Shown here one piece after another: positions 32,891-38,573 of a stretch of DNA of 64,000 nucleotides; position 1 is the stretch's first letter; each line of letters opens with the position of its first letter. A program made the position numbers and the translations under genes. The notes beneath the pieces were generated by a model. It was not told where the DNA came from and searched no databases. It was given only the letters and a program-made list of their open reading frames with translations. This DNA is from Amoeboaphelidium protococcarum X5 (Eukaryota; Fungi; Aphelidiomycota). The stretch spans positions 744,001-808,000 of the forward strand of contig JALDTO010000146.1 in assembly GCA_023515725.1 (NCBI GenBank), given 5' to 3'.

Positions 32891-33352
32891 ATGAATCCGT
32901 TCGAGAGTTATATGCTTTGTCCGTGCTGCGGAAGACCGCTGGTAAATGAGCACAATGTACGAATTTTGAGGCTAAGAATTCTGGCCAGTGGCGCGGCTTG
33001 TGGATTGGCAGGTGCCGCAGCATTACCTCTGCTAGGATTTGGTTTAGCTGGCATTACCTCAGGTAGCTTTGCAGCATGGGTATAAGTGCCAGCGGTTGCC
33101 GCAGGAAGTACTTTTGCCATATTGTAATCTCTTGGCGCCACTGGAATGGGAATTGTTTTGTTTGGCAGTATCGGTTCAGCTGTGGGATTGATATTGCCAT
33201 TGGCTGCTAGTTTAGGCTGGTGTACGTGCCAAACTAATACTAACGATGACTGTGCTAAGAGCAATATGAATATCGTTGAAAACAATCAGCCTGACTCTAA
33301 AAAGGTTGGTGATCCTACGAGTGAAGGCTCTGATTTGAAAACTACTCTGTGA
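32891..33352 (+). CDS. IFI6/IFI27 (ISG12)-like small membrane protein, ~153 aa
   Basis: LGFGLAGITSGSFAAWV[TAA]VPAVAAGSTFAIL[TAA]SLGATG matches the GF..AGI.AGS.AA...VAAGS..A.LQS.GA motif. Confidence 0.8.
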
Positions 33353-33617
33353 AAACTACACAGTGAAAGCATCATGAGAATTTGCGCTTTGAATCAACCC
33401 AGTTCAACAAAGACCTGATTTAGTCAAATACATTGCTTAAGCAAAGAGGAATCCCTCTTGTGAATTTCACTTTCTATTATCTACAAAGCTTGCCCACTTT
33501 TTACTTTTAGCGGTAGACGTTGTTTATTGATAGGATGTTTTTACGGCAAATATGGATGCATTCAATCTGAAATAAATATTGTATTATGTCAAAGTATCAC
33601 TGGATTCATCATTATTA

Positions 33618-35003
33618 TCATTAAGGACAGGTTATAAGGGATGCAGACGCGTAGACATTGTAATTAGTTCTGGCTCTGAATTGGACCCAATCATCTGGAA
33701 GACTATTAATTTGCAAGTCAAAATGAACATCCATACCTACTTCATTCTTATCAGACTGGCCATTGTCGAAGTAACACCACAGTCCTTCATCTGGACACTG
33801 ATCACCTATCACAACAGTGAGTTCACTGAGTGTGGATACTAGCTGGCGATCAGCTTCTGGTTTCTTGCCACCATAATCTTGGTTAATACGGCCTTTAGGT
33901 GTTATACGCCAGCAGGTGTTACCGTAATTCTTATTCCAGTAGTTGAGACCGATAGCTGCCACTGCCATTCCATTAATCTTACCTGGACGCCAAGCACAAG
34001 ATGTCGGAGATCCAGACTTTTCGTACCAAGTGATTGAAGCCTCCAAATTAGAAGCTGGACTTTCATTAGGTTTATCCAAGCACTAGGAATGCCCAAACCA
34101 ATGCTGGTTACCAGATTCCTCAGCAGTGGGAAATCGAGTCTTCCCATAGCGATTAGCCTCAGTGCCATTATTGCCAGTTTACTGCTATTCTGGATATGAA
34201 GGAGGATTTGGGGTAGGTGTTGATGGTTGTTAGTCTTGAGGTGGCTACTCATCCGGCTTTGGGACTTAATACTATTCTTATTCTTATTATTACTGTTGTT
34301 GCTATTACTCGCCTTCAGCCTTCTCCCCCTGTTAATTTGGTGGAGGATTCGGTGGGGTTGAGACATTAGGAATTTACGACTCTGGAGCTTCCTCAGGTGT
34401 AATCGGCGCAGGCTGACCATCTGGCAGATAGTTGTTAGCGTCACCACCTCCATTACCAAAGAAGTTGCTGAAGAATGGAAATCCTGATAGGAAATTCATC
34501 TAAGCAGAAGGCTGTGCGATGTTGAAGGATTATTACGGAGTAGGACTCGGATTCGGAGCAGTGGGTGGTTGAGGTGCCTCAGGAGACGCGACTTTCTGTG
34601 TAGGCTACATTTAAGCATAGGAAGGCGAGTTTCCAGGTGATGGCGCGCTTTAGCCGGATTGAGGCTTAGGAGGAGCAGGAGCAGGAGAAGGATTGGTAGT
34701 CGGTTGACGCGGTGTAATAGGAGGCGGACTGGCTTTCGGCGGACAAACGTACGGCTTAGGCATTTAAGCTGACCCTTTAGCAGCTGATTAACATTAATCT
34801 TCAAGACTCTGGCACTGACTACGCATGGACTCAGAGAAGGATGGACAATTCCAGCACTTTTGAGCAGATTGCTCGCGACATCGCTAATGGAGAGCATTGT
34901 CCCAGCCACCTTGTTACTTCTTGTTCTGATTATTTTGAGGTAGAGATTGGACTGTACATTATTGACTAATTAACACGGCGGATATGATAATTTCGTATTT
35001 CAT
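33618..35003 (-). CDS. Secreted protein: six-Cys module, Pro/Gln-rich linker, C-terminal GH45-B/expansin-like DPBB domain, ~461 aa
   Basis: Signal-like MKYEIIISAVLIS. C-terminal ASITWYEKSGSPTSC...VAAIG...NTCWRIT...VVIGDQCP..LWC...KNEVGMDVHFDLQ...CP[TAA] then TGA. Confidence 0.8.
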
Positions 35004-35312
35004 GGCTAAATATATGTTTCTTGTTTAATTGTTAAGAGAAGAGTGGGATTAGTAAGTACTACCGTGACATTGTTAGATTTTGTGATCAGATTGATCTGTT
35101 ATCATAGGCTCTGCCGGGCGCTATGGGTTGCAATTGTCACTGCGCCTGACCAAGCTGATCACTTGAGCTTTAAGACTTTCATTGATAATTCGACTTATCT
35201 AATGGTTATTTAGGAATCACTGAAAACAGCGTAAAGTGGAGATGGTGATAAGATAGTAGCTAATAAGTAAAACTAAAATATATTCATTATTGATTAGAAC
35301 GTGTCAACACAA

Positions 35313-36605
35313 TCAGTAAGAAGGCTTATTCTTCTTCGCGTCCTTGTCCTTGATATCATCTTCACAGTCCTCATCTTTAGGCTGCACCTTCTTTGGAGGT
35401 TCCTCCTCGCAGTCTTCATCCTTTGGCTTCTAGACTGGCTTCACGGTGAGAGGAGCTGGTGCGGTGCTGTTAGCAGGCTTCACTTGAGGAGCTGGCATAG
35501 TGCTATTAGCAGGCTTTGCAGGGGCTGGCATAGGAGCTGGCTTCGCTGGAGCTGGCATAGGAGCTGGCTTCGCTGGAGCTGGCATAGTGCTATTAGCAGG
35601 CTTTGCAGGGGCTGGCATTGGCATAGGCTTTGCTGGAGCTGGCATAGGCGCTGGCTTTGGTGGAGCTGGGGCTGGCTTTGGGGCCACAGGAGCTTTCTTT
35701 GGCTCATCCTCCTCACAATCTTCATCCTTCTTGTATTTATGCTTAGGCTTACATTCTTCGCAGTCCTTGTCATCCTTCTTGGGCTTCGGCTTTGGTTTGC
35801 AGTCTTTGCAGTCCTTGTCACCCTTGGCCTCATCTTTAGGAGATGGTTTTGGCTGTGGCTGTGGCATCGGCATCGCAGGCTTAGTTGCATTTACAGCGGG
35901 AGTTGGAGCGACTGGTTTGGGCATAGGAGCAATTGGTTTGGTAGCTGGAGGCACAGGTGCAGCAGGCATAGACTGATTAGCAGGAGGCATCGGCGCTACT
36001 GGCTTAGGAGCCGCAGGTATCGGTGCTGGCGGCTTTGGAGCGGCAGGCATTTAACCTGGCATTGGCTGAGGTTTTGGTTGACTAGGATTTGGCATAGGCT
36101 ACTCAGGCATCGGTTACGCTGGTTTTGGCTAAGCAGGCATCGGCATAGGCTTTGGCTACGCAGGCATTGGATTTGGCATGGGCTAACTAGGCATTGGCTG
36201 AGGTTTTGGTTAACCAGGATTTGGCTAAGCAGGCATTGGCATAGGCTAAGCAGGCATCGGCTTACCTGGACCTCCTGGACATTGGTAAGGCGGAGGCATT
36301 TAATCACGACCAGAACATGCTCTCTGACATTGATCTTTGATTTTGTCGCAGTCTTTCATGCCCATTGGGTTGCCACCAGCACAGCTCACACAAGGTTGGT
36401 ATCTTGTGCTCAGGCATTCATCGTAAGCAGCACCATCATTTTTACCACCCATGCCACCAGGAAGACCTCCTTTGCCCATAGGGCCTCCTTATTTGTCGTC
36501 ATCGCAGTCTTTGCCTTTCTTGCCCTTAAGGCCTTTAAGACCGTGATGGCCGATGGTAGCAGAGACAGCAGCAAGATATAATGCAATTAAGGTATAAGAT
36601 TTCAT
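35313..36605 (-). CDS. Secreted non-catalytic Pro/Ala/Met/Lys-rich repeat protein carrying the same six-Cys module, ~430 aa
   Basis: Signal MKSYTLIALYLAAVSA, Cys module, PMPAQP and PAPAKPAPM repeats, KDCKDCK, KDCEECK and DEDCEE motifs. Track ORF 35430-36050 is in frame. Ends at TGA 35313. Confidence 0.85.
35455..36262 (-). repeat. Coding imperfect tandem repeats (27-30 nt units, PAPAKPAPM / PAPAKPANSTM / PMPAQPNPGQPKPQ)
   Basis: Repeated units such as ggagctggcttcgctggagctggcatag are directly visible. Confidence 0.85.
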
Positions 36606-36953
36606 TTTTATATTTAAAATTGTGTTGATATAGTTTATAGAATAAAAAGATGATGGAGGCAGATACTGAACTTATAACGGTGCTGTGAGTTCTGATCTGT
36701 GTGACCAGATTGTGCTGCATTGATTGGTTGATTCGAGTCGCACCATACTCGCCTGACTTCAAATGTAACCAGAACTGATCCATCGATTTGTACAACCTCT
36801 GAAATGCTGCGATGAAGCTCAGAGATATCAGAGATATGAGCTTTTTAAAATGTATAATATATGAGCACTGTATAAAAGGAAATAATATGTGTAATATCAA
36901 AATTCATTGCTTTTTATTCATCATAGATTCAATCAAATTAAAAACTCAATTAA

Positions 36954-38303
36954 TCAACATGCAACTTGAGTTGCTGAGCCATACATAGCACCATATCTTC
37001 CAATCATCTCCATAACCTCAGGATTTGATGTCATAGACTCATCTTGGAAGTCAAAGTGAATCTACTTACCAGCCTGATTGAGATCAGTTTTAGATTCCTG
37101 AGCGCACCACTTCAAATTCTCATAACGCGGACAGCAGTCACCGACCTTTACCTTTATGGTGAGAGTCTGGTCAGGCAGCGGATTCTCCGCAAATTTCAAA
37201 CCATTTGGAAGCTCTGCATCAGTCAAATAACCTTCCAAATTGAGCTACCAACACTGGCCACAATTTGCACCATAGCCCATATCACCATCGTTTGGTGCTC
37301 CGAAATAAGCAGCATTGATGGCAGCGACAGGGAAACCTTCCAGAGGACCTTTAGGCTTAGCGCAAGCAGTCATCTCAAATCTGTTTTCAGTTTTGCTGTA
37401 ATGAGTAAAGCTAGCCTTCATCAGCTGACCATCACCATATGCAGGACTATTTGTTGGGGCACCGGGTGCCGGAGTTGGTGCTGGGGAAGGAGAAGGAGAT
37501 GGGGATGGAGATGGATGTGCACCATCTGTAGCAGGGGCGTATGCCGGCGCAGGGGAAGCACCATTACCAGCACTAGGTTGAGGTGCAGTTGGAGCAGCAA
37601 CTGGGGCACCACTTGGAGAAGAAGTCGAAGGACCAGGAGCAGAGGAGTTTGCACCAGCATAACCTGGAGCATTAACCAGAGTAGAGTTGGAAGAGCCAGA
37701 CGCTTCACCAGCCGGAGCAGAAGGAGGACATTGAAATGGATCAGGCATGCCACTGATCTCACCACGACCTAATCTTTGGCAATCATCTTCAATTTGCTGA
37801 CACTTGGCCTATTGAGGTTGCATGCTCACGCAATCCCAGCACGGTTGAGCAACAGTGTCATGACACTTTCTGTATTGCTATTCATCCCAAGGATTACCAC
37901 CAGAATTGTTTTGCTGAGGAGCCTGAGCAGTTGCATTTTGATCAGGAACATAAGATGGAGTGTTTGGAGCAGGAGCAGCGGAAGTTGAATTCTGTGTGGA
38001 AGGAGCACCAGAAGTATCCTGTGCAGGAGGTGCAGCAGTGGTGTTTTACTCAGATGCCATAGCAGGAGTGTTTTGCTCAGGAACATAAGCAGGAGAGTTT
38101 TGTACAGGAGGAGCAGCAGTGGTGTTTTGCGCAGTTGGAGCAGGTGTAGGCTAATTATCAGCCGCCTTAGCAGGAACATTGTGTGCAGGAGGGGCAGCAG
38201 TAGCATTTTGCTGGGAGTAAGCAGGAGCATTGTTGTGCTGAGGATACGCGGCCACAATTGCACAAACAGAGGCCAACATCATCATTCTAATAGACTTTTG
38301 CAT
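36954..38303 (-). CDS. Secreted protein: Pro/Ala/Gln/Asn repeats, six-Cys module, P/S/A linker, GH45-B/expansin-like DPBB domain, ~449 aa
   Basis: Signal MQKSIRMMMLASVCAIVAA. C-terminal KASFTHYSKT...TAC...VAAINAAYF...GANCGQCW[TAG]L...KVGDCCPRYENLKWCAQ...NQAGK[TAG]IHFDFQ...QVAC then TGA. Confidence 0.82.
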
Positions 38304-38573
38304 TTTACAGAGAGTTTATTATTATAGTTTATTTATTTTATAGGATGGAAGTTTATATATATTTATAATGGAGAAAAGAAGATAGGTCATCATAAGACTT
38401 TTATAACGGCATGTACCATATACCACATTGATTGCAGTTGTAACGTAATCTCGTTGATCTCATTGGCAATCATGCAATCTGGTACCACCTCATTATGATC
38501 AGTCGTTTCCCATGCAGTTACACAAGCCGATAAGGTGAAACAAGACAAGATTAGAAAGTCGTCCCTGTATAAA

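Follow-up and report, generated by a model that had tools for sequence, protein, structure and literature searches.

A six-cysteine module shared by three adjacent genes for secreted-type proteins, two of them with GH45-like domains, in the aphelid Amoeboaphelidium protococcarum

Introduction

Domains of the CBM1, CBM18 and LysM families (CBM, carbohydrate-binding module) occur singly on enzymes and repeated on enzyme-free proteins, with a variable copy number, CBM1 itself being a small beta-sheet wedge. In an enzyme of Gymnopilus dilepis, an N-terminal CBM1 is joined by a linker to a domain of subfamily C within glycoside hydrolase family 45 (GH45) (PMC10909974). Aphelids form the sister group of fungi, and the means by which they adhere to an algal wall and pass through it are in question. 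Amoeboaphelidium (isolate FD01) uses an appressorium for attachment and a penetration tube for piercing the wall (PMC3577820). Aphelid cellulases have been proposed from a transcriptome, direct proof lacking (PMC6299283), and a literature search, to which subscription journals did not belong, yielded no account of aphelid genes of the GH45 or expansin-like kind. Here we describe a window of 64,000 nucleotides (contig C146:744001-808000) of the 23.6-Mb genome of Amoeboaphelidium protococcarum, which parasitises green algae; in this window three adjacent genes, termed A, B and C, share a six-cysteine module that is a real and unclassified domain, attached in A and C to a GH45-like domain.

Three adjacent genes share a six-cysteine module

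The genes are arranged C-B-A on the minus strand, with the following layout.

33618..35003, minus strand: gene A, with ATG at 35003 and stop ending at 33618, 461 amino acids (aa), equal to database protein P0016; probable signal peptide, six-Cys module, Pro/Gln-rich linker and a double-psi barrel domain resembling GH45 subfamilies B and C
34737..34904, minus strand: six-Cys module of A (aa 34-89)
35313..36605, minus strand: gene B, with ATG at 36605 and stop ending at 35313, 430 aa; probable signal peptide, one module and a stalk
36273..36440, minus strand: six-Cys module of B (aa 56-111), with one extra (seventh) Cys
36954..38303, minus strand: gene C, with ATG at 38303 (38285 also possible) and stop ending at 36954, 449 aa, equal to database protein P0018; probable signal peptide, Pro/Ala/Thr/Asn stalk with N-glycosylation sequons, module, Ser/Pro linker and GH45 subfamily C-like domain
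37722..37889, minus strand: six-Cys module of C (aa 139-194)

All three genes are open only when TAR codons (TAA and TAG) are read as Gln, A containing 28 in-frame TAA/TAG codons, B 12 and C 6, of which 4, 1 and 2, respectively, fall inside the modules; across the window, code 6 yields 122 open reading frames of at least 150 aa and the standard code 17. The share of TAR among Gln codons is 28/57 for A, 12/24 for B and only 6/35 for C. The genes are intronless, as is evident for A and C from their identity to the database proteins. Signal peptides were judged from a hydropathy scan alone rather than from a signal-peptide predictor, the N-terminal hydrophobic peak (Kyte-Doolittle, 11-residue window) being 1.95, 2.29 and 2.52 for A, B and C and thus weakest in A; the same scan revealed no C-terminal hydrophobic anchor in any of the three, and the proteins are predicted to be secreted.

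The module measures approximately 56 aa, and its three copies are 36-40% identical in pairwise comparison. Identities at positions other than Cys amount to 14-16 of about 50, as compared to 3.4-3.9 in shuffled sequences, a level reached in none of 20,000 shuffles. A profile hidden Markov model (HMM) built from copies at other loci only recovered, in the six frames of the window, exactly the modules of B, A and C (E 5.5e-14, 2.7e-7 and 1.1e-5), the next-best match having an E value of 0.28. In most copies the Cys spacing is C-x7-C-x2-C-x9/11-C-x6-C-x12/13-C. The ratio of nonsynonymous to synonymous differences (pN/pS), between homeologous copies and a second strain, is 0.09-0.12 for the module of A, 0.07 for that of B and 0.04 for that of C, the counts being small (4-9 synonymous changes per module), while in the remainder of A and C it is 0-0.07 for the C-terminal domains and 0.3-0.6 for the linkers. 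These ratios indicate that the module is under purifying selection.

Searches for relatives of the module

Apart from proteins of A. protococcarum, a profile search of 1.84 billion protein representatives returned only a 90-aa piece of B that stems from a sequencing run and, on repetitive proteins, four weak matches; the restriction to this species is provisional, as the presence of other aphelid proteomes in the representative library is unconfirmed. Pfam searches with 17 module pieces (E ≤5) and with whole proteins (E ≤1) gave no match to CBM1, CBM18, CBM14, LysM, the CBM10 dockerin, CFEM, hydrophobin or ShK. Searches of PDB sequences and of the ESM Atlas with the module gave nothing significant, a Foldseek search (PDB, BFVD) with a model of the module gave generic helical matches, none of them significant, and VIA-align likewise returned generic helical matches with a best Z of 5.1. 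Scans of metagenome and bacterial contigs detected no relative of the module, and a DNA pattern for the Cys spacing performed no better than its control (185 versus 212 matches). Candidates that were considered and rejected comprise a weak penaeidin match on P0003 (E 0.029; 15.5 bits against a cut-off of 25), a DUF3551 match (E 0.013), and P0008-P0010 from the representative search, which are repetitive and lack the module Cys pattern, their best repeat scoring below 9 bits.

It is very unlikely that the module is a strongly diverged member of a described family, or of the Cys-rich repeat found in the anaerobic-fungus protein P0007 (Pecoramyces). P0007 was matched with an E value of 1.2e-7 across eight repeats, the inner copies of which have the same C-x7-C-x2-C-x11-C-x6-C spacing, and the third Foldseek match is an alpha-hairpinin-type leader of Jug r 2 (E 5.3). 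However, each P0007 copy scores at most 15 bits against the module profile, a profile-profile comparison (hhalign) gives a probability of 20% over 39 columns, the sixth Cys of the repeat is N-terminal and the Pro-x-x-aromatic-x-Cys tail is missing, C2 and C3 are separated by six residues in the end copies, and no Pfam or fold match of weight links the module to a known family. P0007 itself (EukProt) is of the secreted type; its eight six-Cys repeats with Pro/Thr/Lys linkers have no Pfam match and possibly represent an undescribed module of anaerobic fungi.

A genome-wide module family

Two profile searches converged on 24 module copies in 13 genes, which is a lower bound. The trio and its second copy (contigs C254 and C312) account for 6 of them, a pair of 166-aa two-module genes that is itself present twice (C135 and C264) for 8, and three Pro-rich genes on contig C244, with 3-4 modules apiece, for the remaining 10. 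Eighteen copies are thus situated at other loci in enzyme-free, mostly Pro-rich secreted-type proteins, and A and C are the only module genes to carry an enzyme domain. At the locus of a second strain that matches the C244 array the genes have 3, 5 and 3 modules, so that copy number varies between strains. The modules of A and C group together in one clade (96/94) and have two Trp in common, the Trp after C2 being confined to these enzyme-borne copies.

The preliminary description of this DNA had proposed that an adjacent, co-oriented trio shares a module which appears only with TAR read as Gln, and had offered a consensus for it. Both points were borne out, as stops are otherwise in frame, the HMM recovers B, A and C, and the consensus fits all three copies. 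The statement that the module is not CBM1, CBM18, LysM, hydrophobin or the fungal dockerin agrees with the absence of Pfam matches, and the proposal of a genuine conserved domain outside described families is upheld by the shuffle test, the HMM and the blank Pfam, PDB and fold searches. The module was also tied to the trio, which does carry it; the family is nevertheless genome-wide and resides mostly in enzyme-free multi-module proteins elsewhere.

Contig C244 begins with telomere-like repeats (C244:1-75) made up of CCCTAA and CCCTG units; the module array lies 4-9 kb away from them and is therefore subtelomeric. This position bears on a further explanation, in which the module is of the effector type and binds a host protein or membrane, for example in blocking an algal defence enzyme or a plug response. 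The module is small, Cys-rich, species-restricted and tandemly expanded, paralogous copies are merely 15-40% identical, and the two 166-aa two-module proteins have the size of fungal effectors. Selection between homeologues and strains is, however, purifying rather than diversifying, and the module is fused to glucanases at the usual position of a CBM, so that we consider an effector role quite improbable.

Several gene models of the family merit comment. The first gene of the array (C244:7752-8804, minus strand) is interrupted, in this assembly, by an in-frame TGA near C244:8400, and the second-strain counterpart of this split gene is annotated as a single 317-aa gene. Just upstream of the second-strain database model P0004 (L053:9830-10702), another frame holds a start resembling a signal peptide together with one more module, which suggests that the N-terminus of P0004 is wrong owing to a frameshift or mis-annotation. 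A secreted-type, Cys-rich two-module protein of about 120 aa, encoded 15 kb past the window (C146 ~822700-823080, minus strand), did not match the module profile and is not a family member.

Predicted fold of the module

An AlphaFold2 model of the module of C (mean predicted local distance difference test score, pLDDT, 86.6) contains helices at residues 5-22 and 28-43, no strands and an extended Pro-rich tail, and the module is accordingly predicted to be a helical hairpin with a Pro-rich tail. Two helices without strands differ from the small beta-rich fold of CBM1, CBM18, CBM14 and the CBM10 dockerin. The disulfides are probably C1-C5, C2-C4 and C3-C6, the last of which would pin the tail back; the first two pairs are deduced from the spacing of the Cys, 8 residues on helix 1 and 7 on helix 2, and the third fits the presence of an extra Cys seven residues past C6 in those copies that were read among the four with Phe at C3. 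In a two-module model, built from a shallow alignment of 7 rows, both hairpins fold, the linker is disordered (pLDDT below 50), the predicted template modelling score is 0.41 and there is no packing between modules, by which the modules are predicted to be independent, like beads on a string.

GH45-like domains of A and C

The C-terminal domains of both enzyme-type proteins match PF22514, a model that spans the barrel common to expansins and GH45 subfamilies B and C.

36957..37415, minus strand: GH45 subfamily C-like domain of C (PF22514, 84 bits; phmmer match to 3x2l)
33621..34088, minus strand: GH45-like domain of A (PF22514, 33.3 bits, above the cut-off of 27)

For C, the best PDB matches are PcCel45A (3x2l, phmmer E 3.3e-8) and GtCel45A (8bzq), both of GH45 subfamily C, and no expansin or loosenin was present among its PDB matches. 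Residues S298, T300, Y302, D389 and N396 of C correspond to Ser14, Thr16, Tyr18, Asp85 and Asn92 of PcCel45A, and C400, N409, H416 and D418 (of an HFD motif) to Cys96, Asn105, His112 and Asp114, Asn92 being the base and Asp114 the catalytic acid; the catalytic and relay roles of these residues have been described for PcCel45A (PMC4643802, PMC5829257), and three catalytic positions (Asn92, Asn105 and Asp114) are marked by point-mutant PDB entries in the alignment. Seven of nine relay residues are identical, Trp being found at the Phe95 position and Leu at that of Gln93. No Asp follows the equivalent of Tyr18, so that the position of the subfamily A/B Asp base is not occupied. The domain shows zero amino-acid changes between copies and is a probable, predicted GH45 subfamily C-like endoglucanase.

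Gene A retains equivalents of Ser14, Thr16, Tyr18, Asp85, Cys96, Asn105, His112 and Asp114 (HFD at aa 427-429, nucleotide 33725), with Glu406 or Asp405 in the place of Asn92 and hence without an Asn92-type base. With Glu or Asp at this position, A may be a variant enzyme, a weak enzyme or a loosening protein; in PcCel45A, an N92D change lowers activity (PMC4643802). Its best PDB match is 5xbu of GH45 subfamily B (E 0.039), and a joint profile matches mollusc subfamily B entries with E values of 0.002-0.011, weak scores by which A appears closer to mollusc GH45 subfamily B. Taken together, A and C are probable GH45 cellulases as judged from their residues. Word-based homologue searches with these domains returned this species or nothing, a result subject to length and word limits that does not imply absence. 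The preliminary description had assigned a wall-loosening-type domain to A and C; these domains are nearer to endoglucanases of GH45 subfamilies B and C, although the Pro-rich linkers that it placed between module and C-terminal domain are indeed present (Pro/Gln-rich in A, Ser/Pro in C).

A GH45-like paralogue of A (C70:45594-46634, minus strand; 51% identity) lacks the module, which therefore is accessory and not part of the catalytic fold. In this paralogue HLD replaces HFD, and its N-terminus consists of a short two-Cys motif followed by a Pro/Ala/Tyr/Gly repeat linker.

Gene B

As previously described, B bears the module on a non-catalytic repeat stalk: the 318 residues after the module are 32% Pro and rich in Lys, Ala, Met and acidic Cys motifs, and a Pfam search identified no catalytic domain.

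35488..35669, minus strand: tandem 27/87-nucleotide repeats coding for the Pro/Ala/Met stalk of B
35722-35825 and 35985-36240: further repeats of B

The orthologue in the second strain has 431 aa, and the repeat length of the stalk differs between strains. B contains 15 Cys in total, several of them in acidic motifs, and as this number is odd at least one is free for a cross-link. These cysteines, with the seventh in the module and the repeated acidic Cys motifs, and the occurrence of most module copies in enzyme-free Pro-rich proteins, would agree with the module being a structural unit of the parasite's cyst wall, appressorium or tube, that is, a compact and protease-resistant bead in a disulfide-cross-linked Pro-rich matrix into which the GH45s are built. 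Such a role is nonetheless unlikely, because the six module Cys can pair internally in a well-predicted monomer, positions other than Cys are strongly conserved, and the Trp residues peculiar to the enzyme-borne copies would be left unexplained.

The single module of B also means that B cannot be a multivalent scaffold through that module, which is relevant to the docking function that the preliminary description had offered next to carbohydrate binding. In a docking system the copies would bind each other or a further partner, and the multi-module proteins would scaffold the two GH45 enzymes. The distribution is scaffoldin-like, with one copy on enzymes and 2-5 on flexible linkers in other proteins, the enzyme-borne copies form their own subtype, and helical hairpins often bind proteins. 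On the other hand, cellulosome-type systems use unlike modules on enzyme and scaffold whereas here the modules on both sides are homologous, just two enzyme genes per haploid set carry the module, and the tandem model, weak as its 7-row alignment is, has no inter-module packing. Docking or scaffolding is hence left without support and is decidedly improbable, while carbohydrate binding stays the best guess.

Neighbourhood and expression traces

Assembly GCA_023515745.1 and a Logan contig show the same C-B-A order. The trio neighbourhood occurs twice in the genome (contigs C254 and C312), with A and C showing synonymous differences of about 10-25%, which would be expected of a hybrid or duplicated genome. 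An IFI6/IFI27-like gene (32891-33352, plus strand) adjoins the trio and converges on gene A, its second-strain counterpart matching PF06140. Contigs from three runs of one study, about 5% divergent from the window, cover A, B and C and look like transcripts: one run has a contig that terminates in poly-A at 33393, and the stretches 33394-33590 and 38319-38515 are barely covered or uncovered. Short contigs from a freshwater metatranscriptome lie over B and C.

Candidate function

Tentatively, we regard the module as a lineage-specific polysaccharide-binding or wall-anchoring module, a function deduced from architecture alone. In A and C it is a discrete non-catalytic domain joined to a putative carbohydrate-active enzyme, as in the functional class of CBMs. 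That it occurs singly on enzymes and one to five times on enzyme-free proteins, is absent from one paralogue and is constrained fits a binding module, and purifying selection of nearly the same strength as in the catalytic domain agrees with a fixed ligand. The module would perform the task of a CBM with a different, all-helical and disulfide-stapled fold. In A and C, a single module may tether a GH45 endo-beta-1,4-glucanase to the wall via a flexible Pro-rich linker, from where the enzyme could nick cellulose or related glucans locally, while B and the proteins with 2-5 modules might be adhesive, lectin-like or wall-coating, tandem copies giving avidity and B possibly being cross-linked through its spare cysteines. 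The ligand may be a glucan of the algal wall or else the cyst wall of the parasite itself, and the proteins may be used at attachment, penetration or exit; the appressorium and tube are where such proteins would be expected.

A number of observations weigh against polysaccharide binding as the candidate role. Just 4 of the 24 copies are borne by enzymes, and no sequence or fold link to any CBM emerged from the Pfam, PDB and fold searches. The sole aromatic site kept in all copies, the F/Y before C6, stands beside an invariant Pro and may serve core packing, and a Tyr before Gln that is common in the family is replaced by Ala in exactly the enzyme-borne copies. A bolder proposal, in which aphelids evolved, instead of CBM1, a new family of CBMs whose all-helical fold holds three disulfides, and in which this family directs the GH45s and the adhesive multi-module proteins to the wall of green algae at the appressorium and penetration tube, seems somewhat unlikely.

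The locus names two GH45-type candidates for wall crossing, one of them with a full catalytic set, and the small module should be easy to express and test. If it binds polysaccharide, it would found a new CBM family with an unusual fold and could provide markers for parasite attachment in algal ponds; otherwise it would just join the other Cys-rich secreted domains that are restricted to one species, and its interest would be modest.

Comparison with described systems

The domain of C has Trp at the Phe95 position, as does GtCel45A, but it can be matched to PcCel45A no further than residue 142 of 180, so that C lacks the C-terminal part of that enzyme, Trp154 included, and a long linker and the unclassified module are attached in C. 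The comparison with mollusc enzymes of GH45 subfamily B (AcCel45A, 5xbu; MeCel45A, 1wc2) reveals a common CP..WC..N..G..HFD region, while the N-terminal Asp of that subfamily is absent here and Asp replaces its Asn ahead of the CP motif. Expansin-related proteins (expansin, loosenin, swollenin and cerato-platanin) share the double-psi barrel, PF22514, HFD, Asp85 and Tyr18; unlike expansins, A and C have no CBM63 second domain and end with the barrel (PF22514 being the only Pfam match), and C keeps the Asn base loop of GH45 subfamilies B and C. The boundary between GH45 and expansin-related proteins is itself blurred (10.1101/2025.10.08.681111).

As regards the module, alpha-hairpinins and twin-CX9C CHCH proteins resemble it in a predicted helix-loop-helix with two probable cross-links, their fold matches not being significant; they contain twin CX3C or CX9C motifs, whereas the module has C-x7-C and C-x6-C, a third pair and a Pro-rich tail. 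Fungal cellulosomes, with their dockerins and scaffoldins, similarly combine an accessory module on secreted enzymes with multi-repeat non-catalytic proteins, but the present module has no Pfam match and a predicted helical fold and is the same on both kinds of protein. The Gymnopilus dilepis enzyme carries CBM1 where A and C carry a predicted all-helical module that matches no Pfam family, yet its order of a small N-terminal Cys-rich module, a linker and a GH45 subfamily C domain is the same as that in A and C.

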